This document shows positions 2,817 to 64,000 of a DNA stretch of 64,000 nt, piece after piece (the first letter of the stretch is position 1; every line of letters begins with the position of its first letter). Origin of the DNA: Zygnema circumcarinatum SAG 698-1b (Eukaryota > Plantae > Zygnematophyceae); assembly GCA_037447605.1 (NCBI GenBank), contig CM074816.1, positions 1,516,525 through 1,580,524 of the forward strand, in the 5' to 3' direction. The translations under genes and the position numbers were made by a program. Below the pieces are notes generated by a model. It saw only the letters and a list, made by a program, of their open reading frames with translations, was not told the origin of the DNA and did no database searches.

Positions 2817-2859
<43 letters not shown>

Positions 2860-6624: not shown

Positions 6625-8357
6625 ATGAGCGCGATAAATGTGACTCAAGTGCTCGTTTTGGACAACCCGAGCCGCTTCACTTCTCCGTTTCAGTTCGAAA
6701 TTTCGTACGAATGCGTTCGGGCGCTCAAAGACGGTACGTATTACATTTTCTAAAAATATAATATAATATTTTGAGGAAGACGGGAGGGAAAAACAAGGTT
6801 TGAGGTATAAAAATTTGGTAGAGAAGCAGAGGGAGGGGGAGGGGAAAAAGTGGGGAGAGTGTGAGTGAGAAAGTGGAAAGTGGGAGAGATAGAAAAGGGC
6901 AGAGTGGGAGAGAGGGAGAGGAGACGAGACGGAAGGGGGAAGAGAGGGAGCGAGAGAGAGGAGAAGAGAGGGAAGGGGGCAGAGATGGAGAGAGCGAGAG
7001 GAGAATAGAGGGAAGGGGGCAGAGAGGGACAGTGAGAGAGGAGAAGGGAGGGAAGGGGGCAGAGAGGGACAGTGAGAGAGGAGAAGGGAGGGAAGGGGGC
7101 AGAGAGGGAGAGAGAGAGGAGAAGAGAGGGAAGGGGGCAGAGAGGGAGAAAGAGAGAGAAGAAGAGGGGGAAGGGGGTAGAGAGAGAGAGAAGAGGGGGA
7201 CAGAGAGGGACGGAGAGGAGGACAGCGCGAGAGATTAGGGAAGAGAGAGGAGGGAAAGAGACAGAGAGAAAGCGACGAGAGAGAGAGACGGACGAGGGAG
7301 GGTATCTTGTTCCATGTATGTTTCGTTCCGTTTTGCTGTTCGTTCCAGTCTGAGTTTGAACCTTGTTAAAGCGCAGCATATGGCGTCGTTTCAACTTTTG
7401 AAATATTTGACGACGCTCCCTTTCGTCTCCAAAACGTTTAAAAAAAAAAAAAAGGGGAGGCCAATAAAAAGTACTTGAAGAAAAGCTTGAAAGGAAGCTT
7501 TTAAGAAAATTTCTCCTTAACAAGGAGAACTTGAAAAGGTGGTTAACATTTCAGCGCATTCCAACATGGCGGTCTCCGCGGGCTTCGCAAATGCCAGTTC
7601 TCGCCGCCACGAGCCCTATAAGACAACCTTTTTTTCTTACAGATTTCTCGAACAATTCTTAACGATTTTTCCATCTGAAACTTCTGGTTTTGCAGACTTG
7701 GAGTGGAAGCTGATCTACGTGGGGTCCTCTCAGGACGAAAAGTGCGACCAAGTGCTTGAGAGTGTGTTGGTGGGGCCGGTCAACCTCGGGACCTTCAAGT
7801 TCATCTTCCAGGTGCCTTTCTCGCCCCTCTCTCTCTCCCTCTCCCTCTCCCCATCCCTCCCACTCTCTCTCCCTCTCTCTCTGCCTTTCTGTGTCGTGTG
7901 CTCTCTCTCTCTTGTCTTTCTCTCCTCTCTCCCTCTCTGTCTTCTCTTTTCTTGCTTTGTATTTCTGCTCTCTCTCGTGCTCTTCGGGTCTTTAGAGTTT
8001 CTAGAGAAAACCCTCTCTCTCCCTACTCCCCCCTCTCATCCTCTCCTCCCTTTCCAGGCCGACCCCCCCAACCCCGAAAAGATTCCGGAAGACGACATTG
8101 TGGGAGTGACTGTCATCCTCCTCACGTGCTCATATATGGGAAACGAATTCATCCGAGTCGGATACTATGTAAACAACGAATATGAGGACGAGCAACTGAG
8201 GGAGGAGCCCCCTTCTAAAGTAATAGTCGACAAAATTCAACGAAATATTTTAGCCGATAAACCGAGAATCACAAAGCTGCCCATTCCATGGGACCCCGTT
8301 CCGTCGCCCTCGACTCCGGCGCAACCGTTTGAAAGCGAACCCGTGACCGAGTACTAG
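6625..8357 (+). CDS. ASF1: Histone H3/H4 chaperone ASF1; 3 exons (6625-6733, 7696-7811, 8058-8357), 174 aa
   Basis: MSAINVTQVLVLDNP..FQFEISYEC..LKD/DLEWKLIYVGS..YDQVL-type..ESVLVGPV..ADPP..GVTVILLTCSY..EFIRVGYYVNNEY is the canonical ASF1 core. Splice sites are clean. Confidence 0.97.
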
Positions 8358-19717: not shown

Positions 19718-22700
19718 AAAGTTTGTTGGCAGCACTTACAGTCCCTGAGAACCATGGAACTTGCAATGTCGACACCTGTCGCCATCCATGCAACTGTCGA
19801 GTCCGGAGGCAGCACCATGATGGACCCATCTATCGGCGAAAGCCAATCTTCCAACGGCTCTGTAATTTGAGCAGACCAAAAAAAACTAAAAAACTTTTGA
19901 GGAAAAAGAAGAGTCAACGACAGAAAAAGGAAGAGAAAACAGACGAAATGAACGAGAAAACTCTCCTACAACAAGTTTCTGCGCTAAGTAAAACCAATCT
20001 TCCTGTCAAAAGCCAATAATCCCCACCTACGCTTCCTTCTTTTTCCTTCACTTTTTTCTTCAGTAAACTAACCATTCAGTACATCAAACTACGAAGTGAA
20101 CTTCTTTTCGAAGAAATTACCTGTTTTAGAAACGAAGGATTGCGGAAAGGACAGCCATAATTGGCTGTCCAGTTTCACTCCAAACCCTGAGGTTTTGCAA
20201 GTGTTCTGCACAAGCTGAGCTCCGTTCTCTATGTTTCCTCCGTCAATGCACAGTCCCGTAAAAGCATTTTGCCATTGAACGGCGGAGTCAGAATTTCGCA
20301 CATAGAGCGGTATCCAATAACCGCCATAAGAATTCCCACAATCTGCAAACCCTAAAAAAACCTCACTTAGCATTATGCAGCGAACTTCAGTACATAACAT
20401 TCAACCGCCGAACATTTCGAAAGAAATATCACTCTCTGAATGATAAATAATCATCATCTGAACCCTAGCAACCTTGGTCTCTTGAAAGTAATTCCTATAA
20501 GTTTTTGTGTTTCTTACCCTGTTGCACAATTTGCAGGCCCACCGTGGTTGAAGCTCCCGGCACATCTAAGCAGAAGCCTCCCGAAGATACAAAATAATTA
20601 TAATTATTAAATTGGTAGTTCGTGAAGAGTTCCCACGTGCTCCCGGAGTTTCCATCGTACCCATTTGGATCTGCGGAAAGGTTTAGGAAAAGGTCATGAA
20701 AACAAGGCAAGTAAACACATACATCACATCCACATCTCCCCCCCCTCCCCCTCCCCCTCAGCCATCCCCCTCCCCTCCCCCCTCCCCCCTCCCCCTCCCC
20801 CCCTCCCCCTCCAGCCATCCCCCATCCCCCTCCCCCTCCCCTCCCCCTCCACCCCCCCTCCCCCCCTCCCCCCTCCCCCCTCCCCTCCCGAAGCCATCCC
20901 CCTCCCCTCCCCTCCCCCCCTCCCCCCCTCCCCCCTCCCCCCCTCCCACCTCCCCCTCCCCCCTCCCCTCCCCCCCTCCCCCCCTCCCCCCTCCCCTCCC
21001 CCTCCCCCTCCCCCTCCCCTCCCCCTCCCCCTCCCCCTCCCCCTCCCCCTCCCCTCCCCCTGCCCCTCAGCCATCCCCCCTCCCCTCCCCCCCTCCCCTC
21101 CCCTCCCCCCCTCCCCTCCCCCCCTCCCCCTCAGCCATCCCCCCTCCCCTCCCCCCCTCCCCTCCCCCTCTCCCCCTCCCCCTCCCCCCTCCCCTCCCCC
21201 CCTCCCCTCCCCCCCTCCTCCCCCTCCCCCCCTCCCCTCCCCCCTCCCCCCTCCCCTCCCCCCTCCCTCCCCCTCCTCCCCCCCTCCCCCTCCCCTCCCC
21301 CCCTCCCCCACTCAGCCATCCCCCATCCCTCCTCCCCCCCCTCCCCCTCCCCTCCCCCCTCCCCCTCCCCCTCCTCCCTCCCCCCCTCCCAGCTGGCTTA
21401 AATCCCCCTCACCCTCCCCCTCCCCCTTCCCTCCCCCTCCCCCCTCCACCTCCCCCTCCCCCTCCACCCCTCCCCTCCCCCCTCCCCTCCCCCTCCCCCC
21501 CTCCCCCCTCCCCCTCCTCCCCCTCCCCCTCCCCCTCCCCCCTCCCCCCTCCCCCTCCCCCCTCCCCCTCGGCAAATCCCCTCCTCCCCCCCTCCCCCCC
21601 TCCCCCTCCCCCTCCCCCCCTCCCCCTCCTCACCTCCACTCACCCCCTCCCCCTCCCCTCCCCCCCTCCCCCCCTCACCCCCTCCCCCCTCCCCCCTCCC
21701 CCCCTCCCCTCCCCTCCCCCCCTCCCCTGCCCCCTCAGCCATCCCCCCTCCCCCTCCCCTCCCCCTCCCCTCCCCCTCCCCCCTCCCCCCTCCCCCCCTC
21801 CCCCCTCCCCCTCCCCCTCCCCCCTCCAAGCCATCCCCCCTCCCCTCCCCCCTCCCCCTCCCCCTCCTCCCCCTCCCCCCTCCCCCCCTCCCCCCTCCCC
21901 CCCTCCCCCCTCCCCCCTCCCCCCTCCCCCTCCCCTCCCCCTCCCCCTTCCCCTCCCTCCTCAGCCATCCCCCCTCCCCCTCCCCCTCCTCCCTCTCCCC
22001 CCTCCTCCCCCCCCTCCCCCCTCCCCCCTCCAACCATCCCCCTCCCCACCTCCCCTCTTTCCCCTCCCCTCCCCTCCCCTCCCCCTCCCCTCCCCCCACT
22101 CTCCTCTTTCTCCCCCCCCCTCAGCCCAAATCTCCCCTCCTCCTCCCCCTCCCCCTCCCCCTCCTCTCCCCCCTCCCCCGCCTCCCCCCTCCCCCTCCCC
22201 TCCCCTCCCCTCCCCCCTCCACCCCTCATTCCCCCTCCCTCCACTCCCGGCCATCCCCCTTCCCCCTCCCCTCCCCTCACCCCCCCTCCCCCTCCTCTCC
22301 CCCCCCTCCTCCACCCCCCTCCTCCCCCCCCTCTCCCGCCCTCTCTCTCCCTCCCTCACACACACATTGTGAGAGGACCATCCCATCGCCGGCGGAACCG
22401 CCAGAGGCCGCCCACGCATTGTTCGACCCGACAGGTGCCACCATGAAGGAACCGTCCTCGGGGGATGTCCATTCTGAAAGCAAGAAGAGAGAGAGAGAGA
22501 CAGGGAGGGAGGGAGGGAGGGAGGGAGGGAGGGAAAGAGGGGCGGGGAGAGGGGGGGGGGGGNNNNNNNNNNCTCCCCCCTCCTCCCCCCTCCCCCTCCC
22601 GCCCTCTCTCTCCCTCCCTCACACACACATTGTGAGAGGACCATCCCATCGCCGGCGGAACCGCCAGAGGCCGCCCACGCATTGTTCGACCCGACAGGTG

Positions 22701-31608: not shown

Positions 31609-35640
<4,032 letters not shown>

Positions 35641-36996
35641 TGCTGCCACGTGTCGCAACCGGAGGCCTCCCTTCCCTCCCTCCCTCCCTCCCTCCACTCC
35701 ACTTCCACTCCTGCCAATTGGCAGACCGAATTTTGCATCAAGTGGTAGGACTGACGAGGGCCCCCGTACGGACATGTATGGACGTTACGGACATCGTATC
35801 GCGATATATCGTCAGTTATCCAAGTCATACATATTTTGACGACATAATATCAAAATGTATCGATATTCCGTCCCAATATATCTTCAAACACCGACATGCG
35901 ATATATCCAAATATGTCGTATCGGAATCTATTTTTTGATATCTCGCATCGCAATGTATCTTAATATATCATATCGAGGATTATTATAAAATATTGGTTGG
36001 AGATATATCGTTTAAATTCCGTATCGAAATATGCAGTATGATATTTCGTCACAATCTATTTCAATATATTGTATCCCGGTCCATATTCTAATTTCGCATC
36101 GTCACCTACCTTGTCTGTATCGTATCGAAATATTTTCAGAATATCGCATTCTAGTATATCTAATAACGTATCGCGACTTGTTCCGAATATCGAATCGCGA
36201 TATATCTTGAAATCATCGTGACGCGTGACTGCGGAGCGGCGTCGGACGGGGTCCCCTGGTCGTACGAAATGTACGGAATCGGTGGCCGCTCCTCGTGGTT
36301 TCACCGCGGGGAGGGGGAGAGGCCGGGCCGGGGCCCGGGGGGGGAAGGGATGGGGTCGGGGCCCGTGCTGCGAGGGGCGGAGGGAGGTTCGGGATGGCAT
36401 GAAATTAGGGTTGGCATTGGACGCTATGGAACCGCTCCTTGGCCGTGCGAGACAACCTTCAAGCACGATTCGATGTCTGTAGGGGGCGCTAATAATAAAA
36501 CATGGCAGATTTGATGACTGTGCTGCCAACCGCCACCGTCTGCGCTCAGACAATGAGAGACTGGCTCGTTTCCTTCGTGCTTGAGTCCTCTGTGACCAAC
36601 CCCTCGTGGTTCCCCATTGCTTAATGGCTTTTATTTGTCTTTGTAAATTTGGATGGCATCGCCGGTGTGAGATCAATACATCATTTCTTTGTTTTTTCAA
36701 ACACTATGAAATCATACACAATATGTGAAGAGTAATATTATCCAATCCCTTCACTCCGCGCTCGTCCTCAACCATGCTGCTTCTTCTACCTGTCCCAATT
36801 CTGACTCCAGCAATTTCCTTCTCAACACCACTATAAGCTTCCAAAATTATTCCAAAAATATATAATCTTGCAAACTGAAACTCTCATTAACTTCAGATAC
36901 CCAAAAACCCTAATTTAACTTACTTAACCAGCCAATTCTTTGAAGCCCTCCGACCCATCAAGACTTCCTCTATGTCGTCGTAATCCTTCGTCTCAT

Positions 36997-39900
36997 CTAT
37001 CGAACGAAAGGCTTCTGAGAAATAGGAGGAATGAAGGATTCCCCTGAATTACTCGAGTACGCAAATGGAATTTCGATTGCCGTTAGGGTTTCATCTTCCT
37101 CAGGGAGAGGGAGAGGGAGAGAAGAAGGGCCGCTGCTAAGGCCGGCGAGGGCAGTCTCAAGCTGTCGCGTCACGTCCGCCATGGACGGCCTTGCTTCAGA
37201 GTCATCTCTTGTGCACATCTGCGCGACCTCCACCATCGCTTGCATGGCCGCCATGGAGTAAGCTCCGGTCAGCTTTTCGTCGACAATTTCGCTTATCCGG
37301 CCTTGATTGACAAGAGGGAGTGCCTGTAATAGGAAGGAAATAGAACGCAGACAGATTTTCGAATCATGACATTCTTGAGAAAACAGAATACATCTTGCTT
37401 TTAGTAATCATTAGCAAGGGCATTAATAGCCGATTGGCTATTCTAACTCAAAAGAACTCATTTCAATTTTCTTTGGATCAAGCTAATGGTGATGCATGGC
37501 GAAATCTAGCATCAGAAAAAGAAGCCGAGGACGAAAAAGTAGCAAGAAAAGAAACGGCAAGAAACCAACCGCCAAACCATAGAAATCTTAAATTTTTCAA
37601 ATATGAAATGCCGGCGATAGCTTACCCATCTTTTGACATGAACCACTCTCGCACTCATAGCAAGGTCTTCATCTTTGAATATTGCTCTTTTCCCAGTGAT
37701 GAGCTCCCAAAGCACAACTCCAAAGCTGCAAACCGTGCTCGGTACACTTGTTATCAAAAGGTGCCTTCCAGCAATTTCATAAGTTTCTATCGACAAGTTT
37801 TGCCTGTTTAAGTGTAAAACTGTAATAAGAAAACAATGAGAATCCCAGAAGTATAACTTTTGGCCTCAATTCAATTTAACTTCTGTTCGCTTCGATCTTC
37901 AACCCCCAAAAACACTAAAAATCGCTTCAATCTTCACTGCACAGTATTACAGGTGGAATCTGAGCCGTCCAAACCTCCGAGCCTTGCAGATATTCATACA
38001 GAACACATGTACGGATTAGGGTTTGCAGGTTGGGCTGGACTTGCCTGTACACGTCAGACTTTGTGGATACTTGAGCAGGGGCTCTGATCTGGGGGTCCAA
38101 ATACCTGCCATCAAAGGTAAAGGGTTATTAGGGTTATTATTATTAGTTATCAACTAGTGGTGGGCCAGATAATTACGACAGAAAACTCTAATCGCAGTAT
38201 GATAACTTGGCGTTCAGGGTTTAGAGTTCAGGAATTTGGTCGTGGTTAGGGTTTTGGAAGGAGGGCTATCCCTCAAAGTTCAACAATCCAATCTCTGAAC
38301 CTCCTCTAAAACACGGTTTTGATTTACAATGAAACTAGAAGCATATGGATATGTAAATAAGGTCAGACCTAACCAAAGACGTCAACATTCAGCGCTATTC
38401 TAAGTGTCGTGAAGTTCTAGAAATTTTCAGGGTGTTATTTGTTGATGTAGGTTTTAAAAAGTTTTTTGAATCTCTGGTGAAGTCTTACCCTATTGTTCCC
38501 GCAGGGGCTGTGGCAAATGTAGAAAGGTCAACCTTCTGCGGAAGTTTTCTGATAAGACCAAAGTCTGCCACTTTTGCCTGTAACAAAAGGAAATTGTCCT
38601 TAGACTAGTTCGATTATTTTCACATGAAGAAAAGACTTAGCGATTTGACGTTCGTTCCAATGAGAATGTAAAGCTTTCAAACCAGAAAAAATCTCATGTT
38701 CCCTCATATGTGCAATTCAAAGGGTTCAGCAACTACCTCCATTTCCAGCGTGAGGAGGATGTTTTCGGGCTTTATGTCGCGATGTACGACCGGCTCCTTT
38801 GTAAAATTGTGCAAATAATGGAGGGCTCGAGCAACCCCAATCGCAATGTTAAGACGCTCTTCAAAAGTGAGGAGCGAGGAGCCCGATTCTGCGATACCAT
38901 GAATATAGCAAGAATGAAGCAAGAAGAAAAAAATTGGAAACTATAACATGAATGTAGGATGAATGTAGGATGAATGTAGCATGAAAGAATTACATGGCAT
39001 CAATCTAACACGAGTACAGCATGTTCAAATTTGTCGATAACCAATGTTGAATCTTGAGCAAAACGTATGTTTTAAGGAGGGCAACATCCGGCGACTCAGG
39101 CATTGTGAATAGTGGCTGGGAAAATGCTTAAGTACTGTTTTTAAGTGTTATAACTCGTCTGTACCTTCAAGTTTGTAGGTCTTCGGATGCTTTGATATGC
39201 AGAAAGGCAAAAGACGATAGAAAATTTCTTAAAAATTTGTAATTTGCCTTTTGTATTAATTTTTTTCTAAATTTTTTTTTTTTTTTCGCGAATGCTTCAC
39301 TCACCCGCCTGAGCATCAAGATGTTGTCGGAGAGTGCCGTTTTCCACATATTCGTAAACGAGAATGTGTTCCCCCCCTTCACTGCAGTAGCCCAATAGAG
39401 CCACCAAGTTCTTATGGCTCATGGTTGCGAGAAGTCTCACCTGCAATGGCACAAAAAATCCAAAGTTGACAAGCTACAATCATGAGCACGAAAAGTAGAC
39501 AGTAGGAAGGTATGGGCTAATTCAGCAGTTTTGACTATGACCTAAGGTTGGTTGAAGGTGAAAACATTAAGCTTCAGATCAGAACCTCACCTTGACAACG
39601 CAACAGCCTGCTTTTTTCTAAAACAACTCACCAGATTATGAATTAAGGTTTTAGGGTTTTTAGGGTTTTTAGGGTTTTTAGGGTTTTTAGGGTTTGACCC
39701 TCGACATCAGCCTAATCATTGCTCCGTCTGGCCACTATTTTCGAATCATTTATGTCCATTGATGTGAAGCTGAAAGTACAATGGTCCATCTTGAAAGTAT
39801 AATGAACATTAGAGCAATTCATTTGAAAGATTGATGAGGTGTCCCAAGAGAAATTTTGAGTTTCTGTCGATCAAAGCGGTTGGAGGGGTCTAGGGTTTCA

Positions 39901-42900
39901 GAGTCTACAGAGGAAATTAAATTTATATTCATACCTCTCTTTTAAAATCCGCTATGCTTTCCTCCTTGTCATGTGCTCGTTTCACTGCCCACAAACTTCC
40001 ATCAGGAGAGACCCCCTGATAGACAGTGCCAAAACCCCCTTTTCCAATCGTTTTCTCATTGCTGAAATTATCCGTTGCTTTCATGATATCGGCTAGGGGA
40101 ATGGGCATCGCGAATTTTTGGCGTAGCTCCTCATCTAAAGCATGCATGCCTGCATGCAAAGATGTGCGACATCACCTCAAATTAGCAATGATGACATACG
40201 CCGTTAAGGTCTGATGCTGTTTGAAGTTGACATGTGCGCATACCAAAGCGTATGCATGCATGCATGCATGCATGCATGAAATGTGAGGTAGTTCTATTGT
40301 GGCGCTATTCTTCCTCACTCCCGCAAAGAGAATGAAGAGTGTTTAGGCACTAGAAAATGTGACGTCACCAGCATTGCCAACTGCCATGCGGAAATAAAGT
40401 CACATGTTTTGCTTCTCGACAGAGAGTGCTAATAGGTAGAATTAAAGGCTGACCATCTGCAGGTTGGTAGCCGTTTTTCGACCGCCGTTTACAACAGAAA
40501 AGAAAGCACAAAAGAATCATAACAGCAATTGCGAGTACACCTCCAACGCTTGTTGCCACCGCGATGATAACAGTCGATTCTGTGGAAAATTGAACCCAAC
40601 ACAGCTTGTTATGATCTTTGTGATAGTTTAATAAACGAAAAAAAATGTATGACTGAGAAGACTTTTCGAATGTTAATCCGAGAGAACGATAATGCACTTG
40701 CTTTCACTGGATTTGAACATTTTAAAGTGTAGAACATTAGCTGTTAATAGAATAGGAGCAGTTGCGCTTATTCCAAAATGGAAAGTTGACTCCTTATAAT
40801 CCTTGTAAACATACTCATAATAAAAATGATCTCCTAATCTTCAGGTATGAAAGGGTGAGAGAATAAAGGTAGTTTCCAAAATTTACCGTTGTTTTTTGAG
40901 TGTGGTGGTGGTGGTGGTGGTGGGGGTGATGGCTCTAAAGAAGGGGATGATGGTGTTGAAGGAGAGGGTTCTGCGATTGAGAAAAAACAAGAATTCAATG
41001 AGTGAACTGGAATAATTCAAAAAAGTATCAATGTAGGAAGAAAAGGTCGTTTCATAAATACCATTTCCATTGACGGGAGGTGGTGGTGAGGATGATGGTG
41101 TTAAAGGAGATGGTACTGCAATTGAGAAAGCAAAGAAATTCAATGAGTCTGTATAGAAATGGTATTTGTTCAAAATACAAAGTAACACTCGCAAACAGGC
41201 ATTCTCTCATTTTAGAGTACAGATCCTCATCTTGTAAACATTCATCTTTGGTCATGCAAGTAGTGTTCTCAGCTTACTTCAAAAGAGTGCAGCTTTCTTG
41301 ATCATGGTAAAACATAGGGTTCACTTTACAAAACTTGCGATGGCAAAGCCATCGAACTAGCCAACAACGAGAGAGGAGAAAGAGAGAGAGCGGGAGAGAG
41401 AGAGAGAGATCAAGAAGAAAGGGATGCCGAGAGGAAGCCAAGGCAGCAGTGTGCCAAATGACCATCACTTGAAAAAATCAAAGTCATTAGAATTTGTTCT
41501 AGAGAAATACCTGGCGAAGGAGGCAATGGAGGGGGCGGAGATGGTGGACCTGCACCATGAAGGCACATCGAAACTTGTCACAATAAATCATTCTAAAGAA
41601 ATGGAAATTTCCATTGCAAAAAATTGAAATCCATGTGAGGATAGAACCACAATGTCTATCAAAGTACGGACACGTGCTCTCCGACACGCACTTACTTGAC
41701 ATGTGTCACTAAGCCGAGCAGCTATGAGACACTTTTGAGTTTGAGTGACAAAATATGGCCACTGTGGCCTCATATTACTGTTGTACTATGGACGCGACAG
41801 GTGTGCTCCCACCATCTTGAAACCACAAAAAAGCGTATGTACATAAATATAACTCACCGATTTTAATGTCGCCAGAAATCCTGAAGCACCACTTTCCAGA
41901 AGTGTTCACGTTAGAATCGTTTGTCAAATTCGACAGTTGTTTATAGTTTTCAAACAGATTCAGATCGTCTTCTCCACCATCGGCATATCCCACTTCCCTA
42001 TCTTTGGGAGGGCCCACTGCTCCCTCCATTTCACACAAATGTCCCGGCTGCACTGGCTTAAAAAGGTTGAGAAGTGACTCAATGAAGACATACTTTATAC
42101 GACAACAAATTGAATTCACACTTTTAGGGTAAGTTCTGCTGAGCTCTAAACATTTCAATAACTCACATGCAGAAATCAAAGAAAATGGAACGTTGAAGAT
42201 ATTGAGTAGAAGACGACATCAATATCCAAAGGTGAGACCGCTCACCCCATTGCAATTCCCCCATTGGATAGAGAAAACAAGTGTAAGTCAGCGGTAATAG
42301 GGAATCCCACGTGAGCCACATCTGAAATGTGTTTAACTTATCGGTTGTGCTCCTGCGAGTGAGCACATACATAGGGATGAGGCATTTGTAACCGACATTT
42401 TCATAATACTATCCCTTACTGTAAGCTCAGAGAAATCGATATCTCATAGAAAAGCGTTGAAGAGAGAAAATATCTGAGTCTAGAATTTAGATTGCTAGTT
42501 AAGTCATCAATGGTTAACCGTTAAGCGAGGACACCAATGTTGACTCATGTATTTACATTAGTGACATGATCTAGTGGAACATAGAACCAACGAAAACTGT
42601 ACGAGAACAGGTTCAACTTACTGGCCCTGTGCCACAGCGATGTAGGACACCACTAACCCTCCATCCGGTTTGAAAAGTTTGACGTCTGCATCTGCGGAAA
42701 ATACTTTTTTCACATCTTGCTTCAGAAGTGCGAGGCCTGTGGAGTTATTCGATGCGTTCAGCATTCGGTAGTATACGTATCCTTTGAGTGTTGTGTCTGA
42801 AAGGAAAAGACGAAGGAAAGTGAAATGGTGAGAGTGAAAATGGGACGAAAAGAGGAATGGCCAAGACACAGGATAAAAGAGGAAAGTAAAAGCAAGGATC

Positions 42901-44236
42901 ACTGTAGGCGTTTTCGACATTGTTGAGAGTTTGGTGACACCAGTCTGGATAACTTATATGCTATGACTGAAGAACTAAGTCAAAGGGAGGGAGGGAGGGA
43001 GGGAGAGAGAGAGGGGGCGGCTCCGCCCCTTCCTCTCTGCTTCTTGCAAGGAGGAAGGGAGGGAGGGGGAAGGGAGGGGGGGAAGGAACGTAGATGGAGG
43101 GGGGGGGCCTCCATGCAGCAGATAAGCTGTGCTTGGTCACGGCAACCCTCTATATGCAATTGATAAGTATCTCATTTGTAGTCTTAACTAGGGAAGACCC
43201 GGGATGAGGCTAAAGCGGCTTGTTTGGTTCCTTTGTTCGTGTGTGATCTTATATAGATGAATCCTTTGAGCACGAGAATTTGGCATTCGCACGCCCGCCT
43301 GAAATGACAGCTAAAGGCAGGCAAACCCTTATAGCTGACGACCAGAGCGAACTCCCCAGCCAATGCGAAGCCGGATTCCATTTGTGGGTGCCCTGTTTGA
43401 GGGCGGCAGGAAAAGCGGGCTCTCTCCCTCCCTCCCACCCTCCCTCCCTTCCTCCCTGCCTGCTTGCTTGCCTCCCTCCCAACTCCCAACTCCCTACATC
43501 CCCCCTTGCCTCCTCCCTCCCTGCCTGCCTCCCTGCCTCCCTGACTCCCTCCCTCCCTCCCTGCCTCCTTCCTCCCTGCCTGTTTCCCTGCTTCCTTGAC
43601 CTCCTCCTTCCCTGCCTCCCTCCCTCCCTCCCTCCCACCCTCCCTCCTTCTCATATGGATTGTGGATGCGATAAGCTACTCCCAATCTAATTCAGTGATC
43701 GCAAGGAATAGAGCCGTAACGCGCTCACCCGCATCGTCACCGAACGGAGCGACATACACTTCCGACCTGTCAGAGGAAGGCGAGGGAAGGTATAAGGGAA
43801 AAGAGAGAGAGAGAGAGAGAGAGCGAGAGCTGAGACGGGTAGACCTTTAAGAAGTGAGGTTACAGTGTAGTGAGGTCATTTCTGTGAAAAAAATAGAGAG
43901 AGAGAGAGTAGGGAGAGGAGAAGAATGGGCGAGAGAGAGAATGCACCCGGCACCGGGAAAATTTATTCGTCCATCGTTGCTGATGTTCAAGGAAGTGATT
44001 GTGTAACTGAAGAAGGACATGGGCGCGGGCATCTTCATGAGAGCACTCGTGCAATCGTCGCAGCGCTTTAACTTTGCATCGCCATTTTCAGGACCGTACG
44101 GAACCAAGTCCGCATCTGAGAGGGAGGCCGCAGGCAGCGGAAGAGAGAGAGACGCGAGAGCCAGCAATGGCGGGAGAAGGAAGGGAAGGGACTTGGGCAT
44201 CTCTCTCGCTCTCCTCCGTGACGCGACGGCAGCCAT
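36997..44236 (-). CDS. Receptor-like kinase (RLK/Pelle type): signal peptide / NIDO-like ectodomain / Pro-rich stalk / TM / Ser-Thr kinase; 16 exons, ~716 aa
   Basis: Exons 44236-43947, 43766-43729, 42796-42622, 42352-42246, 42016-41858 (acceptor uncertain), 41549-41511, 41115-41062, 40970-40887, 40579-40454 ([31 protein letters not shown]), 40149-39935 (GKGGFG, WAVKR), 39440-39305, 38888-38737 (HRDIKPEN), 38577-38489 (DFG), 38104-38045, 37725-37626, 37323-36997. Total 2151 nt, all in phase. Confidence 0.9.
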
Positions 44237-45299
44237 GGAGGACTCTCCGGAGCTCCCGGACTCTTCGGCCCCAGCTGTCAACCGCGACCTCCCCGAACCT
44301 GACAACCCCAAACCCACAAAACGCCAAACCCTAAAAACGCCAAACCCTAAAAACGTCAAACCCTAAAAACGCCAAATCCTAAAAACGCCAGACCCTAAAA
44401 ACTCCAAACCCTAAAACCCCAACCCTAAATCCCCTTGACGAAAGGGGCGATCTGCATATGGCGAGAAGGGCGAGGCCCCCAACGGTCGGCGCGGGACCGT
44501 CGTCCGCCGGCGGAGGCGGCAGCACTTGAAACCGTTTTCACTGTACGGCATTGCAGCCGTGAGATTCCCGATCTATGCTCCCAGTTCCGCGTTGCAGTTG
44601 AGAGTGACGTCAAGATGACGGAAACAAAAACCACAGCGCGAGAGATAGGGTCTTTTACTCCTTTTACACAACGGGATTTGGAAAAAAAACTATAGATTTG
44701 CTGACGTTTTGCATACGTCATCAGTTCCAGCTCGAGTGCGTTGGAAGCATTGACGGCCGCGTGACGTCACGCCACGGGAGGGGCGGGACGGGCTGACTGC
44801 AACTGGAACTGGAATTGCGACGAGTTCTATGCTGAACGGTGTTGTTATTGTTGTTGTTGTATGATGTCCAACGACAGCTGTGCATGCAGCCGAGTTGACT
44901 CTCTCCGTTGACTAATGATGAAACTTTAATGCCAATATTACCTCTGACGTATTCGTTGCCATGAGCCAATGGAGACTGGCCACGTCAGCGTAGTGTCCGT
45001 AGATCATTTCCTCTCACTTTACGGCTTGTTTTCATGGCAGGCAAAAGAAGAGACGATAGGATGTGGCATTGACCTCACGATGGCGATGATGCATGCCATC
45101 ACATGTGCATGCAGAACATCAGCATCACAGGGAACCACGAGGAACATTGGGCGAAGAAAAGGTATTCTATTGGGTAAGAAAAGGTAGACGAAATAGCCGG
45201 AGAGTTGCAGAGAGGAGAGGCGAGAGAGTGGACGACGACAGAAAGGCTGAGGAGAAGTTGGAAGAAGGACGAGCGAGTGAAGAGGAAAAGGAGGGAGTG

Positions 45300-46229
45300 G
45301 GAGAGGGAGAGGGAGGGAGAGGGAGAGGGAGAGGGAGAGGGAGAGGGNNNNNNNNNNGGAGAGGGAGAGGGAGAGGGAGATGGAGAGGGAGAGGGAGAGG
45401 GAGAGGGAGAGGGAGAGGGAGAGAGAGAGAGAGGCTCGAGTGGGGAAGACAGTGGGGGCGGAAGAAGGGAGCCAGAGAGTGGTTCTGCTTTCTGAATTTC
45501 GATGTATACATTTTTAATTTTGAATTTATTTTGCGTCTCTCAGATCGTACCCTGTCTTTCCAACGCCGTTGACAAGCGTATAGTCCAGAGGAGGAGCTGC
45601 AAAAAAAAAAAAAAGAAAAAAAAGAAAAAAAAAAAAGGGGGGGAAGGGGGGTGGGGAAGCAATTTAGAGAACTGAAAATTAACATGTGAGGGAGGGTTGA
45701 AGCAAATCTGTAACTCAGAAAGAGATTGAAAATATGAATTATGGAAAACAGTCTATTCATTCAAGAACCTGAAAGACTGTCTCACAAACATCTGGATTAA
45801 AGAGAAATAGAGGGAACAAAGGTAGGATTTAAAGTCAAGCTCTCTCACCCACTCCCTTCCTCCACCACGTTTCTTTTCATCTCCATCACAATCTATCTGC
45901 CCTCTCCCTCTCTCTCTCTCTCTATCCCCCTCGCTCTCTCTCCCACCCCTTCCCTCTCTCCCCCTCTCTATCTCTCTCCCTATCTCTTCTGCTGCCCCCC
46001 CCCAAGGTCAGTAACAGCGCATCCTGAACCTTCAACCCAAAAACATAAGCCCTCAACCTGAACCCTGAACTCGGAACCCTAACCCTTCAAACGTGCGCCC
46101 TCGGGCAGCACCCCTTAAACCCTACAACCCTAATCTCAGCCGTACGCCTTAAACCCTGAGCCCTAGGCCCTTACCAGACGAAGCGGCACCGCTCGTCTCC
46201 GCCACGTCGGATCCCTGCTCCACGCCCAT
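45300..46229 (-). pseudogene. Truncated duplicate of the SSUH2-like gene (exon 1 46229-46175 and exon 2 45596-45551 only)
   Basis: Near-identical to 35640-35586 and 35060-35015 including introns and upstream region (to ~46880). No exon 3 follows. Confidence 0.85.
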
Positions 46230-55100: not shown

Positions 55101-55346
55101 GCGCAGGCAATCCAATTTTGTACTCCATTTTCTTTAAAATAAACAAAATAAACATTGTCTTCATATTTAAAAATCACGTTAGAAGAATGACCAGGTCACA
55201 AGGAAGGATCTCTCACAGTTTGTTGACTCTTTTTGGTGAAGTTGTGGTGCATCCTACACCGTCCCAGTTGCATACAGAGCTCTCTAGCTTCCAGTTACTC
55301 AGGACGTCGTTTGCGATCGCCCTCTTGAACTCCAAAAGAGCAACAA
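47200..55346 (-). CDS. LRRNT / LRR (~7-8) / Cys-rich EGF-like / papain C1A / EGF x2 / LysM x4 coding region, with in-frame TAA at 49738-49736 and no own start exon found
   Basis: 55346-55217 (VALLEFK..LSNW..CNWDGVGC), 54761-54678, 72-nt phase-2 LRR exons at 54003, 53722, 53444, 52994 and 52708 (LSNNKLSGVIP etc.), 52383-52031, 51812-51624, 51320-51094 (KDQGSCSSCWVF), 50826-50689, 50467-50248 (DHSVVVVGY, WIIRNSWG), 49854-49672, 49379-49236, 48902-48769, 48588-48499, 48365-48258, 47852-47655, 47406-47200. Further LRR exons may have been missed. Confidence 0.85.
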
Positions 55347-55707
55347 CTGTACCAATTGGCAGAAGACAGCCATGGAGAGAGTCTTAAAATAGCTTGAAGC
55401 CACACAGTAAGCTCTAGGCATCGAAAGTGCAGGCTCAAGCAGCAGTTCTGAACGAGACCGATGACTGACTGAACTCTATTCCCTCTTGGCATTGAACACT
55501 GCATTTTGTATGGTGGATTTGATGTCCTAATGATGCTCCTAGCGCTCAGCCAGCAAACCTTTCTCACATAATGATCAACAGAGGTGGGGAGGACTGGTTT
55601 TCCTCAAAGGTAGTAGTTTTTCGATGATGACTAATGTTTGTGCAACCCAAAAAACGACAGAGATTAAAAAACAAAGGAAAACAACAATCTTTACAACTTT
55701 CCATTAC

Positions 55708-58700
55708 CGTCCGTAGAAAGTGGCGGCGGCGGCGGCCTTGGGGGAGGTCGAGGTGGCGGTGATCGCGGAGGAGGCGGAGATAGAGGCGGCCTTAGAGAAG
55801 GCGGAGGTGGCGGGGGTGATGGCTCTAAAGAAGGGGAGGTTACTGCAATCGTGAAAGCACAAGAATTCAATGAGTGAACGAAAACACTTGAATAAGTATC
55901 AATGTGGGATAATAAGGTAGTTTTCATAAATACCATTGTTGTTGAGGGGAGGTAGTGGTAGGGACGATGGTAAACGAAAAAGAAAACAAATGTCTGACTG
56001 AACATTTTCTTATTTTGGAGTACAGATCCTCATCTTGTAAACATTACTATGAGAAGTCCCTTTTTTCTTTGGATGTGCAAGAAGTGCTCTCACTTACTTC
56101 ACACAGAGTGCAGCTTTCTTGATCATGGTAAAACATAGGGTTCACTTTCCAAAACTTGCGATGGCAAAGCCATCGAACTAGGCAACAACGAGAGAGGAGA
56201 AAGAGAGAGCGCCGAAGAGAGAGAGATCAAGAAGAAAGTGATGCAGAGAGGGAGCCACGGAAGCAGTGTGCCGACAATGTGTTCTTGAGGTATACCTGGC
56301 GATGGAGGCGATGGCGGCGGTGGAGGAGATGGCGGCGGTGGAGGAGATGGCGGCGGTGGAGGAGATGGCGGCGGTGGAGGAGATGGCGGCGGTGGAGGAG
56401 ATGGCGGCGGTGGAGGAGATGGCGGCGGTGGAGGCGATGACGGCGGTGGAGGCGATGGCGGCGGTGGAGGCGATGGCGGCGGTGGAGGAGATGGCGGCGG
56501 TGGAGGAGATGGCGGCGGTGGAGGAGATGGCGGCGGTGGAGGCGATGGCGGCGGTGGAGGCGATGGCGGCGGTGGAGGCGATGGCGGCGGTGGAGGAGAT
56601 GGCGGCGGTGGAGGAGATGGCGGCGGTGGAGGCGATGGCGGCGGTGGAGGCGAAGGAGGCAATGGAGGGGGCGGAGATGGTGGACCTGCACCATGAAGGC
56701 ACATCGAAACTTGTCACAATAAATCATTCTAAAGAAATGGCAATTTCCATTGCAAAAAATTGAAATCCATGTGAGGATAGAACCATAATGTCCATCGAAG
56801 TATGGACAGGGTGCTCTCCGACACGCGTTTACTTGGCATGTGTCACTAAGCCGAGCGGCTACGAGACAGTTTTGTGTTTTAGTGACAAAACACTGTATGG
56901 CCATTGTGGCCTCATATTACAGTTGTACTATGGACGCCACAGGTGTGCTCCCACAATCTTGAAACAGAAAAAAAGAGTATGTACATAAATATAACTCACC
57001 GATTTTAATGTCGCCAGAAATCCTGAAGCACCACTTTCCAGAAGTGTTCACATTTGAATCGTTAGTCAAATTCGACAGTTGTTTATAGTTGTCAAACAGA
57101 TTCAGATAGTTGTTTCCATCGGCATATCCCGCTTCCCTATCATTGGGAATGCCCACTACTCCCTCCATTTCACACAAATGTCCCGGCTGCAGTGGCTTAA
57201 AGGGTTGAGAAGTGCCCCAATGAAGACATACTTTATACGACAACAATTTGAATTCACACTTTTAGGGTAAGTTCTGCTGAGCTCTAAAAAATTTAATATC
57301 TCACATGCAAAAAACAAAGAAAACGGAACGTTGAAGATATTAAGTAGATGGCGGCATCAATATCCAAAGGTGAGACCGCTCACCCCATTGCAATTTCCCC
57401 ATAGGATAAAGAAAACAAGTGTAAGTCAGCGGTAATAGGGAATCCCACGCGAGCCACACCTGAAATGTGTTTAACTTATTGGTTGTGCTCCTGCGAAGTG
57501 AGCACATACATAGGGATGAGGCATTTGCAACTGACATTTTCATAATTGATGCTCGATAACCTGTGGGTGACATTACTATCCCTTACTGTAAGCTCAGAGA
57601 AATCGATATCTCATAGACAAGCGCAGACGAGTGAAAATATCTGAGTCTCGAATTTAGACTGCTTGTCAAGTCATCACAATGTATGCCGTTATGGTTTACC
57701 GTTAAGCGAGGACACCAATGTTGACTCATATATTCACATCAGTGACATGATCTAGTGGAACATAGACCCAACGAAAACTGTACGAGAACAGTTTCAACTT
57801 ACTGGCTCTGTGGCACTCCGATGTAGGACACCACTAACCCTCCATCCGGTTTGAAAAGTTTGGCGTCTGCATCTGCGGGATATACGTTTTTCACATCTTG
57901 CTTGAGAAGTGCGAGGTCTGTCGGGTTATTCGATGCGTTCAGCATTCGGTAGTATACGTATCCTTTGAGTGTTGTGTCTGAAAGGAAAAGACGAAGGAAA
58001 GTGAAATGGTGAGAGTGAAAATGGGACGAAAAGAGGAATGGCCAAGACACAGGATATAAGACGAAAGTAAACCATGGTTCACTGTAGGCGTTTTCGACAT
58101 TGTTGAGAGTTTGGTGACATCAGTCTGGATAACTTATGCTATGAGTAAAGAACTAAGTCAAAAGGGAGGCAGGGAGGGAGGGAGAGAGAGAGGGGGCGGC
58201 TCCACCCCTTCCTCTTTGCTTCTTGGAAGGAGGGAGGGAGGGAGGGGGAGGGAGGGGGGGAAGGAACGTAGATGGAGGGGGGGGGCTCCATGCAGTAGAT
58301 AAGCTGTGCTTGGTCACGGCAACCATACATATGCAGACCCGGGATGAAGCTTGTTTGGTTTCTTTGTTCGTGTGTAACCTAAAAAGGTGAATTCATTGAG
58401 CACGAGAATTCGGCATTCGCTCGCCCGCCTGAAATGACAGCTAAAGGCAGGCAACCCTTGTGGCTGAAGACCAGAGCGAACTCCCCAGCCAATGCGAAGC
58501 CAGATTCCATCTGTGGGTGCCCTGTTTGAAGGCGGCAGGAAAAGCGGGCTCTCTCCCTCCCTCCCACCCTCCCTCATTCCCTCCCTCCCTTCCTCCCTGC
58601 CTGCTTGCTTGCATCCCTCCCAACTCCCTGCCTCCCTACATCCCCCCCTGCCTCCTCCCTCCCTGGCTGCCTCTCTGCCTCCCTGCCTCCCTGACTCCCT

Positions 58701-59366
58701 CCCTGCCTCCTTCCTCCCTGCCGGTTTCCCTGCTTCCCCGACCTCCTCCTTCCCTGCCTCCCTCCCTCCCTCCCTCCCACCCCCCCTCCTTCTCATATGG
58801 ATTGTAAATGCGATCAGCTACTCTCAATCTAATTCGGTGATCGCAAGGAATAGAGCCGTAACGCGCTCACCCACATCGTCACCGAACGGAGCGACATACA
58901 CGCCCGACCTGTCAGAGGAAGACGAGGGAGGGTACAAGGGAAAAGAGAGAGAGTTAGAGAGAGGGCTGAAACGGGTAGACCTTTTAGAAGTGTGGTTGCA
59001 GCGGAGTGAGGTCATTGCTGCGAAAAAATAGAGAGAGGGAGAGTAGGGAGAGGAGAAGAAGAGAGAGAGCATGCACCCGGCACCGGGAAAAATTATTTTT
59101 CCATTGTTGTCAATTTTCAGGGAAGTGATTGTGTGACTGAAGAAGGACATGGGCACGGGCATCGTCATGAGAGCACTCGTGCAATCGTCGCAGCGCTTTA
59201 ACTTTGCATCGCCATTTTGAGGACCGTACGGAACCAAGTCCGCATCTGAGAGGGAGGCCGCAGGCAGCGGAAGAGAGAGACACGCGAGAGCCAGCAATGG
59301 CGGGAGAAGGAAGGGAAGGGACTCGGGCATCTCTCTCGCTCTCCTCCGTGACGCGACGCCAGCCAT
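55708..59366 (-). CDS. Duplicated RLK ectodomain: signal peptide / NIDO-like / extensin-like (SPPPPP)n; exons 59366-59077, 58908-58871, 57977-57803, 57490-57384, 57155-57000, 56685-56296, 55842-55708; no TM or kinase
   Basis: Exon-by-exon paralog of 44236-40887 with matching exon lengths for the first four exons and an intact frame. It ends at a phase-1 donor, or by read-through at TAA 55691. Confidence 0.85.
56300..56650 (-). repeat. Coding 18-bp tandem repeat (~19 x Ser-Pro5)
   Basis: GATGGCGGCGGTGGAGG(A/C) units on the + strand. Confidence 0.95.
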
Positions 59367-60129
59367 GGAGGACTCTCCGGAGCTCCCGGACTCGTCGGAC
59401 GCAGCTGTCAGCCGCGACCTCCAAAAACCTTAAAACCCCCAAACCTGTAAAGTCAACGAAAGGGGCGATCTGACCGTCAGCCGGCGGGGGCGGTGGCAGT
59501 TAAAACCGTTGCCACTGTACGGCATTGTGGCTCCGTTCTATGCTCCCAGTACCGTGGTCCAGTGAAAGTGACGTCATGGAGACGGGACGTGAGCGTGGCC
59601 GTACGGACAGGTCATCGCGCAACGACAGCATGGAAGGGTTGCGGGATGTGACGTGGCATGACACGATTTTGACAGTTGACCTATTGGTTTGTACATTTTC
59701 TTTAATCGACCCGATTTGTTGGTATACGGTATCCCCCCTATTAATATTTTCCACCCTAGTACTTGAATTAAGCAAGAAATTCGCCCTGATTTTGAGGAAA
59801 CCACTATTTGTACGGAAAGTCTGTGTTGTTAACCTTACCTGTCCTATTTTTCAATACAAAATCTGTTAATCGAAACGGGTTTCGAGCATGGGTCACGCTA
59901 TGCCGCTGTACGGTAATTACAGAAAGTATCTCCAACCCGTACGGTATATATTTGGCACCAATAGGAGTTCGTGTAGTTAAATGTACGGCACCAATAGGAG
60001 CCCGCCAGGAGGCCATGGGCCTCTGTACAGTACAGAGAGACACGGACTACCTTATATTTTCAAATTCCAAGATTTTCGCCCAATATTTGCCGAAACCATG
60101 GCGAAAATATTAGGGGAGGTTAAGGTAGT

Positions 60130-61469: not shown

Positions 61470-63748
61470 GGAGAACTATATACCCCCCCCCCTTTTTGGT
61501 TATCCCGCCACTGTTTTTTTGAAATCCGACCCTCCCATTTCGGCTATTCTGCCCCCTGTTTTGAAATATCCGGCCCCCCCCATTTTGGATATTCCCCCCC
61601 CCCCCCGTTTTCTCCTTTCACACATCAGCGCAACGTTCGAGAGAGAGAGCAACGGAGAAAGAGAGTGAGCAGAGGAGTGAGAGCAAAGGAGAGAGAGACT
61701 AGAGTAGAGAGCACAAGAGAGAGCAAAGGAGAGAGAGATAATGAGCAGAGGAGAGAGAGTAGAGGAGAGAAAGACTAGAGTAGAGAGAGCAAAGGGGAGA
61801 GAAACTAGAGGAGAGAGCAAAGGAGAGAGAGATAATGAGCAGAGGAGAGAGAGTAGAGGAGAGAAAGACTAGAGGAGAGAGAGCAGAGGAGAGAGACTAC
61901 AGGAGAGAGCAAAGGAGAGAGAAGAGAGAGAGAGAGCAAAGGAGCGAGAGCCGAGGAGAGAGAGTATAGAGGAGAGAGAAAGAGCAAAGGAGTGAGAGTA
62001 GAGGAGAGAGAGACTAGAGGAAAGAGCAAAGGAGAGAGAGAATGAGCAGAGGAGAAAGCAAAGGAGAGAGAGAGAGTGAGTAGAGGAGTGAGAGCAAAGG
62101 AGAGAGAGACTAGAGGAGAGAGCACAGGAGAGAGCAAAGGAGAGAGAGAGAATGAGCAGAGGAGAGAGAGTAGAGGAGAGAAAGACTAGAGGAGAGAGAG
62201 CAGAGGAGAGAGAGAGAGAGAAAGAGAGAGAGAGAAGAGAGAGCGAGCAAGCAAGCCAACCATTACATCATGACAGAGCTTCACACCCACCAAAAGAAAA
62301 AGGGATAAAAAGAGAATAAATTTTTTTGTGCCATCTCCCGAACACATTCCTTCTCGTGAATGTCTAAGCGCCTTTTCTCAGCATACCCAGTGGAAATGAC
62401 GTGGTTGTGCTCTTCAACGACAGATTTTACAGCCCACATGTCCTTCTTCTTGGAAAACGTCGCCCTAATCTCGAAAGGGCAATTTTTCAAGCGGCTGGAA
62501 GTATTCCTCTTCTTACTACTCTCTTCCAGACCTCTGTCCTCGTAGGTCCCCCCGCTAAAGCATTGCAGGTAGAGTCGGCGGCTATCGCTATGCTTGCCGA
62601 TCTTGATGTGAAATCCTTCCTTCTTGTAGTGCTTGGTCAAGACTTGTACAAGCTCATCGCGAGTCTTATACTCAGTCATTTGTGTGGAGATTGCAAACCG
62701 AGAGGAAGAAGGGAAGGGAGAGGTGGGCAGGGGAGGGGAGGGGTGGGCAGGGGAGGGAGGGAGGGAGGAGCAGGGAGGAGGGAGGGAGGGTGGAGGCAGG
62801 GGAGGGAGGGAGGGGTGGAGCAGGGGAGGGAGGGAGGGAGGGAGCAGGGGAGGAGGGAGGGAGGGGGGGAGGGGAGGGAGGGAGGTGGGCAGGGGAGGGG
62901 AGGGAGGGAGGGGTGGGCAGGGGAGGGAGGAGGGAGGGAGGGCAGGGGAGGGGAGGGGAGGGTGGAGCAGGGGAGGGAGGGAGGGAGGGAGGGAGGAGGA
63001 GGGAGGGAGGGAGAGGGAGGGAGGAGGGAGGGAGGGAGGGAGGGAGGGAGGGAGGGAGGGAGGGAGGAGGAGGGAGGGAGGAGGGAGGAGGGAGGGAGGG
63101 AGGGAGGGAGGGAGGGGAGGGGAGGGAGGGGCGGGGTGGGCAGGGGAGGGGGGGAGGGAAGGGGAGGGGAGGGGAGGGTGCGCAGGGGAGGGAGGGAGGG
63201 GTGGGCAGGGGAGGGAGGGAGGGGTGCGCAGGGGAGGGGAGGGGAGGGGTGGGCAGGGGAGGGAGGGAGGGAGGGAGGGAGGGGAGGGAGGGAGGGGCGG
63301 GGTGGGCAGGGGAGGGGGGGCGAGAGGGGTGCGCAGGGGAGGGGAGGGGAGGGGTGGGCAGGAGGGGAGGGAGGGGTGCGCAGGGGAGGGGAGGGAGGGG
63401 TGGCAGGGGAGGGGAGGGGAGGGGAGGGGAGGGGAGGGGAGGGGAGGGAGGGGCGGGGTGGGCAGGGGAGGGGAGGGAGGGGAGGGGAGGGAGGGGTGGG
63501 CAGGGGAGGGGAGGGGAGGAGGGAGGAGGGAGGGAGGAGGAGGGGAGGGGAGGAGGAGGGAGGGAGGGCGGAGGAGGGGAGGGTAGAGGACGGGAGGGGC
63601 GGGAAAGAAATATTCAAAACAGGGGGGCGATCTCCTCCCGAAATATCCAAAATGGGGGAGGGGGGCAGAATAGCCGAAATGCGAGGGTCGGATTTCAAAA
63701 AAACAGTGGCGGGATAACCAAGAAAAGGGGGGCGGTATATAGTTCTCC
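61470..63748. mobile_element. Mutator-like element, copy 2 (same family as 26359-27519), carrying a transposase fragment
   Basis: Same TIRs GGAGAACTATATAC.../...GTATATAGTTCTCC. 8-bp TSD TCAAAATA at 61462-61469 and 63749-63756. Shared internal core GCAAGCAAGCCAACCATTACATCATGACAGAGC. Confidence 0.92.
62281..62679 (-). CDS. FAR1-type (MULE transposase N-terminal) zinc-finger DNA-binding domain fragment, 132 aa
   Basis: [27 protein letters not shown] gives the C..C..HNH pattern of FAR1/WRKY-GCM1 domains. It lies inside the MULE TIRs and no DDE domain is present. Confidence 0.8.
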
Positions 63749-64000
63749 TCAAAATATTACAAATTTATTGATTTGCAGCCTCTAAGCCAATTAAGATCTC
63801 TTGTAACCACGTGGCGGTCAACAATTCGTCAGAAAGAATCCACACGATTCTAAAGCAATCCTAAAAGTATTGGAAAATCTCGAGATTCTACAGATTGAGT
63901 TGATCCTCTTACCTCCGTACCGTAACAGCTTCTGAACTAACATTAACCCTGGCGGGACCGGCGGGTTGATCCTGGCACCTGGACCTCACCCGCCGTCCGT

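Follow-up and report, generated by a model that had tools for sequence, protein, structure and literature searches.

NIDO is best known as a domain of the animal extracellular matrix, and we know of no function assigned to it even in animals. Receptor kinases of plants are classed by their ectodomains, a new head amounting to a new class of perceived signal. Among them are the proline-rich extensin-like receptor kinases (PERKs), in which the ectodomain is an extensin-like Pro-rich segment only and a globular head is absent. Here we describe a gene of the streptophyte alga Zygnema circumcarinatum SAG 698-1b which encodes, in one open frame, a NIDO head, an extensin-like stalk, a single transmembrane helix and a receptor-like kinase (RLK) domain of the RLK/Pelle type. 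The gene is located on the minus strand of a stretch of 64,000 nucleotides (GenBank assembly GCA_037447605.1, contig CM074816.1, positions 1,516,525 to 1,580,524 of the forward strand), hereafter the window, to which all coordinates refer.

The NIDO Pfam family has been reported from several streptophyte algal genomes (PMC11096116). It is found in filamentous Zygnema and is absent from unicellular Zygnematophyceae and from land plants (Feng et al. 2024, PMC11096116), and most families of the list that includes NIDO were deemed older than Phragmoplastophyta (PMC11096116). The text and supplements of that paper that were examined give presence or absence of the domain only, with no NIDO-kinase combination. 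The literature searched (full text, RLK surveys and metaRLK papers) contained no paper in which receptor kinases of plants or algae are tied to NIDO or nidogen, and no NIDO-kinase protein was found in the databases, in which algal proteomes seem poorly covered. These searches agree with an earlier note on this DNA, made by reading the letters alone, according to which NIDO is not among the known ectodomain classes of RLKs. The new part is the NIDO ectodomain on a known type of receptor, NIDO in streptophyte algae having already been published. The features of the gene are the following:

36997..44236, minus strand: complete coding region for 716 amino acids (aa), 2148 nt and a stop codon spread over 16 exons
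44123..44236, minus strand: predicted signal peptide, approximately aa 1-38, with Arg-rich n-region, Leu/Pro/Ala h-region and AAS-LS cleavage-like site
41871..44113, minus strand: NIDO domain, aa 42-252, in exons 1-5
44236-43947, 43766-43729, 42796-42622, 42352-42246 and 42016-41858, minus strand: the NIDO-encoding exons 1-5
40887..41549, minus strand: extensin-like Pro/Ser stalk, aa 257-316, exons 41549-41511, 41115-41062 and 40970-40887
40454..40579, minus strand: exon 9, with the single transmembrane helix (aa 317-345), a stop-transfer signal (KRRSK) after it and the first part of the juxtamembrane segment
37168..40066, minus strand: RLK/Pelle-type RD protein kinase, approximately aa 386-660, exons 10-16
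36997..37167, minus strand: C-terminal tail, approximately aa 661-716, plus stop, in an open frame to TAG

Every peptide string of the earlier note was recovered in the six-frame translation of 36900-44400, on the minus strand and scattered over several frames, which is what a split eukaryotic gene would show. The gene model was constructed from splice signals. It starts with the ATG at 44236, upstream of which the six-frame translation contains no further in-frame ATG ahead of a stop, and ends with the TAG at 36999-36997. Five public RNA runs of one and the same organism (X1-X5) match the stretch, and the contigs of four of them were compared over 39200-44300. Joints in these contigs read CT..AC on the plus strand, that is GT..AG on the minus strand, and each falls precisely at a modelled exon border (43766/43947, 42796/43729, 42352/42622, 42016/42246, 41549/41858, 41115/41511, 40970/41062, 40149/40454 and 39440/39935); these joints account for introns 1-7, 9 and 10. 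The five ectodomain exons splice in frame, with all five joints present in the contigs.

Exons 1-4 are covered by X1 record 3 (741 nt), exons 4 and 5 are linked by the joint 42016..42246, and X1 record 1 (1142 nt) runs as a single contig from NIDO exon 5 through the stalk and the transmembrane exon to kinase exons 10-11. Within the latter contig an unlisted 174 nt match stalk exons 6-8 (39, 54 and 84 nt) to within a few bases, and intron 8 was placed by this length accounting. For intron 11 a loose contig end at 39305 equals sequence 38859-38888, the first bases of exon 12. Introns 12-15 lie beyond the compared stretch and were modelled on the basis of homology to kinases, the open frame and splice signals. 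One of these, between exons 14 and 15, likely belongs to the GC-AG class; its donor at 38044-38045 (minus strand), likewise outside the RNA-compared stretch, was chosen because it is the sole donor that preserves the conserved DVYSFG, whereas the nearest GT donor would remove Tyr-Ser.

The RNA contigs are undirected assemblies, and the contig depth in X1 is 53.9 in the 5' part of the gene but 131.6 in the 3' part. Together with the fact that none of the contigs spans the whole coding sequence, this would also suit two adjacent genes, one for a secreted NIDO-extensin protein and one for a kinase, linked only by read-through, by contig assembly or by the gene model. We consider such an arrangement very improbable, as X1 record 1 leads from NIDO exon 5 to the kinase exons with all joints GT..AG and in frame, and the same joints are present in four runs, the kinase-side joints of X1 recurring in the contigs of X2-X4. 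Moreover, neither a stop nor an alternative start is located between the head and the transmembrane exon, and a transmembrane kinase devoid of signal peptide or ectodomain would be atypical.

Repeats were noticed in two introns. At 39542-39712, within intron 10, each of the four runs reaches a summed contig depth of approximately 2100-3200, and loose ends and joints that go back are numerous; this segment includes a repeat reading NPKNPKNPK in one frame and is probably a dispersed transcribed simple repeat outside the gene proper. Intron 2 (43187-43675) contains a long GGGAGG-type microsatellite which can be read without a stop in several frames of both strands (as GREGG and LPPS repeats), and similar microsatellite arrays occupy much of the window, e.g. 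at 20665-22446 and 62401-63785.

Homology searches for the ectodomain were run with the separate exon pieces, the spliced protein being compared with a local profile only. Two of these pieces match Pfam NIDO (PF06119): that of exon 4 scores 23.7 bits (E 5.5e-5) over profile positions 97-127, and that of exon 5 scores 18.6 bits (E 0.002) over positions 144-185; the two matches are colinear and sum to 42 bits against a cut-off of 25 bits, below which each of them lies singly. The exon 1 and exon 3 pieces have no Pfam match; exon 1 is mostly upstream of the start of the model and exon 3 encodes the variable middle of the domain. In an exhaustive HMMER search of 1.84 billion representatives the exon 1 piece retrieved 21 matches, with best identities of 36-41% over about 50 residues. 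Twenty of the 21 were scanned against Pfam; the matches include nidogen (NIDO+G2F+EGF+LDL-B), cnidarian SNED1, fish mucin-like and D8C+NIDO proteins, and further multi-NIDO metagenome proteins and bacterial surface proteins. The match is always positioned directly ahead of, or overlapping, the start of Pfam NIDO in the target.

A local NIDO profile of 219 positions was built from 14 animal and metagenome NIDO units. Against it the spliced ectodomain scores 73.9 bits over positions 4-216 (aa 42-252), where the first approximately 55 positions are partly circular, their units having been retrieved with exon 1, and the rest is independent; the best of 2000 shuffled ectodomains reaches 7.2 bits. 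The resemblance of the predicted ectodomain to NIDO is thus far above chance. In a MAFFT alignment (A1) the four exon pieces line up colinearly with the NIDO units, and the hallmark motifs fall into register. Seven N-glycosylation sequons, all on the ectodomain side of the transmembrane helix, and four Cys are present in the ectodomain.

None of the 21 exon 1 matches from the exhaustive search carries a kinase and none is from a plant or alga; the missing algal relatives say little, as the library evidently lacks both the proteins of this genome and the paralogue found in the window (see below). A scan of metagenome contigs with the exon 1 piece revealed no relative. A search aimed at NIDO-kinases of approximately 700 aa used alignment A2, in which a 739-aa 3xNIDO protein is combined with exon pieces from the two paralogues; it returned only relatives of the first row. 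The feature search of the ESM Atlas with exon 1 delivered a weak result that serves as a lead only. The shape search with the NIDO model delivered NIDO clusters in animals, many bacterial surface proteins and phages, none of them joined to a kinase.

A maximum likelihood tree was computed for 16 NIDO units. The two algal heads share a separate long branch in it (1.56 changes per site), outside the animal and metagenome clades, with a weak tie to nidogen that may reflect long-branch attraction. Since the closest database relatives of the head are animal, bacterial and metagenomic, with no plants among them, and the fold is widespread in bacteria and phages, a foreign NIDO had to be considered, stemming from animal or bacterial contamination or from recent horizontal transfer from either. 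We hold this explanation to be extremely improbable. The head contains four GT..AG spliceosomal introns and is spliced to plant-type stalk, transmembrane and RLK exons in one transcript; identity to anything in the library does not exceed 41%, and then just over the short stretch mentioned above; the algal pair stands apart in the tree; and NIDO is known from several streptophyte algal genomes (PMC11096116). Judged from the introns and the low identity, recent transfer or contamination appears unlikely.

No PDB chain is matched by the sequence of the nidogen NIDO. A fish NIDO unit (P0011:282-497) was modelled by AlphaFold (pLDDT 90.2) with alignment A1, which includes the exon pieces of the window. 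Foldseek found nothing significant in the PDB for this model, and with VIA-align the best Z of 5.4 is below the noise level stated for the tool; the top rows, which at this level give a hint of glycan binding only, are beta-supersandwich domains from carbohydrate-active enzymes (glycoside phosphorylases, hydrolases, lyases and mutarotases). AFDB clusters obtained with the NIDO model comprise animal NIDO proteins only. That NIDO might bind glycan or matrix is a guess, if a reasonable one.

The putative signal peptide was assigned by hydropathy and by direct reading, with a Kyte-Doolittle peak at aa 16-35. The stalk consists of 48% Pro and 25% Ser+Thr, contains three SPPPP-type motifs and is probably hydroxyproline-glycosylated. 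A shorter-stalk isoform is indicated in run X4, in which a joint 40970..41511 skips the 54-nt stalk exon 7 in frame. The transmembrane helix comprises 29 residues, and nowhere else in the protein does hydropathy peak as high as here (2.87 at aa 327); exon 9, in which it is encoded, sits within RNA contigs that also contain stalk and kinase exons, and the juxtamembrane segment has the form usual in RLKs. The signal-peptide-like N-terminus, the sequons and the downstream transmembrane helix fit an extracellular placement of the NIDO head as far as hydropathy and motif reading go, and the protein would have a single-pass type I topology.

Pfam Pkinase matches were obtained for the exon 10 and exon 12 pieces. 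The kinase motifs are GKGGFG (aa 393), the Lys in WAVK, HRD (510), DFG (530) and an RPSM-type subdomain XI. When three kinase pieces were compared with all PDB sequences, plant RLKs ranked best (BAK1, BRI1, Pto, SYMRK and FERONIA), followed by IRAK1; among solved kinases, exon 10 is closest to BAK1 and BRI1, and exons 12 and 16 are closest to SYMRK and FERONIA. Because of these matches the predicted kinase is assigned to RLK/Pelle, and it would be expected to be active. The open frame over 16 exons, the contigs and hydropathy place signal peptide, ectodomain, single transmembrane helix and kinase in one polypeptide.

A second copy of the head, identified by tblastn and blastn, is located upstream of the gene with the same exon plan and on the same strand:

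56640..59366, minus strand: tandem paralogue of the head, with signal peptide, NIDO exons 1-5 and an expanded stalk exon

The stalk exon of the paralogue contains a long (SPPPPP)n run (open reading frame 56123-56704), and the paralogue extends to approximately 55700. According to blastn the blocks 41513-44314 and 56649-59445 share 89% nucleotide identity over 2.8 kb, counting the introns; along the stalk the similarity declines, and it stops at approximately 40910, in the last stalk exon. The window contains no second kinase, neither after the stalk of the paralogue nor elsewhere, and the sole kinase is that of the kinase-linked gene.

Exons 6-9 (39, 54, 84 and 126 nt; three of the stalk and the transmembrane exon) are all of symmetric phase 1-1. 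Such exons can be inserted, deleted or swapped without a break of the frame. From these phases and from the recent neighbouring head-stalk duplicate that lacks a kinase, the gene was probably assembled or remodelled via exon shuffling. The comparison shows NIDO plus stalk to be a mobile cassette, which is compatible with an old as well as with a new kinase-linked form. Since the tandem duplication that includes the head is very recent and the ratio of nonsynonymous to synonymous divergence (dN/dS) is approximately 1, the gene may be young in the form that it has now.

The latter observation bears on a different explanation, in which the gene is a young chimera: a recent segmental duplication would have put a NIDO-extensin head, originally from a secreted wall protein, before the transmembrane and kinase exons of an older RLK, or the reverse, and the product would be transcribed and drift neutrally, its receptor function not being settled. 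Consistent with such an origin, the similarity of the duplicated block includes the introns and fades at the end of the stalk, the identity of exons 1-5 (92-94.5%) equals that of the introns (90.5-94%), the head has dN 0.068 and dS 0.065 (NG86, pairwise), and no NIDO-kinase relative was found in the databases searched. Nevertheless we regard it as unlikely. Frames and splice sites are intact in both copies, and none of the 34 residues that differ between them falls in a NIDO hallmark motif. Splicing of the transcript is correct, and its depth is much like that of its kinase exons. Since the duplication the kinase-linked copy has accumulated a shorter branch than the paralogue (0.04 vs 0.13), as if it were more constrained, which is a weak sign given the very distant outgroups. 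Finally, a dN/dS of 1 at a dS of 0.065 represents few changes, and diversifying selection on a receptor head would give the same value.

Downstream of the stalk of the paralogue are LRR, EGF, papain and LysM-like exons. Just 3' of this stalk, at 55216-55475 (minus strand), lies a signal-peptide-like open reading frame (MAVFCQLVQLLLFWSS...), followed by an LRR N-terminal cap (ALLEFKRAI...CNWDGVGC). As it directly precedes the cap, this putative LRR-EGF-papain-LysM gene may have its own start and not be spliced to the paralogous NIDO head.

In the earlier note the gene had been read as a receptor-like kinase with a NIDO-like ectodomain, a Pro-rich stalk, a transmembrane helix and a Pelle-type kinase with GxGxxG, VAVK-type, HRD and DFG motifs, a reading that was made to depend on a significant NIDO hit or fold match and on cDNA joining ectodomain and kinase. 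All of these parts hold up: the ectodomain by the Pfam matches on two exon pieces, the retrieval with exon 1 and the local profile score, the stalk and helix by the Pro content and by the hydrophobic stretch followed by KRR, the kinase by its motifs and by the PDB matches to RLK, Pelle and IRAK, and the joining by contigs that link NIDO, transmembrane and kinase exons in one open frame. The locus is probably a genuine and expressed gene for a receptor kinase of the RLK/Pelle type, which would cross the membrane once (type I) and carry a complete NIDO head on an extensin-like stalk. The architecture, the transcript and the homology of both ends are established here, whereas topology, kinase activity, class of ligand and signalling are predictions. 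In such a receptor the stalk would hold the NIDO head, as the ligand-binding part, off the membrane; the head, placed in the cell wall or extracellular matrix, would bind a matrix component, either glycan or protein. Binding might alter receptor clustering or the choice of partner, and the RD kinase could then phosphorylate cytoplasmic targets like other RLKs do. That the receptor senses matrix or mucilage, as the earlier note had proposed, is pure conjecture.

Several observations weigh against this reading. The full-length mRNA is pieced together from overlapping contigs, with no one read or contig extending from ATG to stop. The Glu of the APE motif is replaced by Gln (GYLDPQ), which is unusual for an active RLK. 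With a dN/dS of the head of approximately 1 and exons conserved no better than introns, constraint on this NIDO head is not demonstrated. No orthologue of the same architecture was found in the database searches, where coverage of algal proteomes is poor, and the class of ligand is a guess, the NIDO fold being without a significant solved relative. The missing orthologues and the undemonstrated constraint set the limits of the finding.

As a receptor, the gene adds a head of matrix type to the repertoire of the algal relatives of land plants, and NIDO wired to a kinase offers a tractable route to asking what NIDO binds. The kinase-less adjacent duplicate and the phase 1-1 stalk and transmembrane exons illustrate cleanly how a receptor is built by exon shuffling. 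More tentatively, and with less than even expectation, NIDO-headed receptor kinases could represent a true lineage-specific class of streptophyte algae in which the extensin-stalked head reads the state of wall or mucilage and reports through the RLK kinase. If this were true, NIDO would be an ancient matrix- or glycan-binding module common to bacteria, animals and the plant lineage, and the gene would be the first direct signalling read-out for finding what NIDO binds.

Two further features of the window were noted. An element of approximately 580 nt flanks the gene on both sides (34741-35300 and 45281-45858; 83% identity), the two copies containing similar open reading frames starting with MNRLF and microsatellite arrays. 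At 7539-8357 (plus strand) there are exons resembling the histone chaperone ASF1 (LEWKLIYVGSS... and ...IRVGYYVNNEY...), with an intron rich in CT repeats between them.

Compared with the animal matrix proteins that contain NIDO (nidogen-1/2, SNED1, alpha-tectorin, MUC4, SUSD2 and mesh; PF06119), the algal protein likewise has a complete NIDO of approximately 210 residues, at the N-terminus of a predicted extracellular region, with the hallmarks in the same order (YG..GD, DD, FF, NG..F, APF.DD, G.VYYR, NTFQ, GY and SNVN..GKW.FR). In the animal proteins NIDO is followed by G2F, EGF, AMOP, VWD, ZP or sushi domains, whereas here an extensin-like stalk, a transmembrane helix and a Ser/Thr kinase follow. 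Identity is only about 25-36%, and the four Cys of the algal head (CDDC plus two more) are not found in the aligned animal units.

The protein resembles PERKs in the Ser-Pro(n) extensin-like segment immediately before a single transmembrane helix and an RLK/Pelle kinase. It differs from them in the 210-residue NIDO that precedes the stalk, and therefore falls outside a class defined by an extensin-like ectodomain alone. The activation segment is of the YLDP type, which we take to be that of the WAK, CrRLK1L and SYMRK groups, the PERKs presumably having YLAPE. With the wall-sensing RLKs (CrRLK1L/FERONIA, WAK, SYMRK and L-type lectin RLKs) it shares the receptor logic, and for exons 12 and 16 the nearest solved kinase domains (SYMRK and FERONIA) are among them, but their heads are malectin-like, GUB_WAK/EGF, LRR or legume lectin domains instead of NIDO. 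The RLK surveys examined make no mention of a NIDO-RLK.

Bacterial and phage proteins, secreted or exposed at the surface, that combine NIDO-like domains with PEP-CTERM, He_PIG, RTX/Hint or CHU_C modules have the same predicted fold class, with a TM-score of 0.72-0.80 to the NIDO model; unlike the algal gene, these come from prokaryotes or viruses, contain no introns and have no kinase attached. The NIDO of streptophyte algae (PMC11096116) is the same domain, for which that paper gives presence or absence only, whereas in the gene described here it is linked to a kinase.

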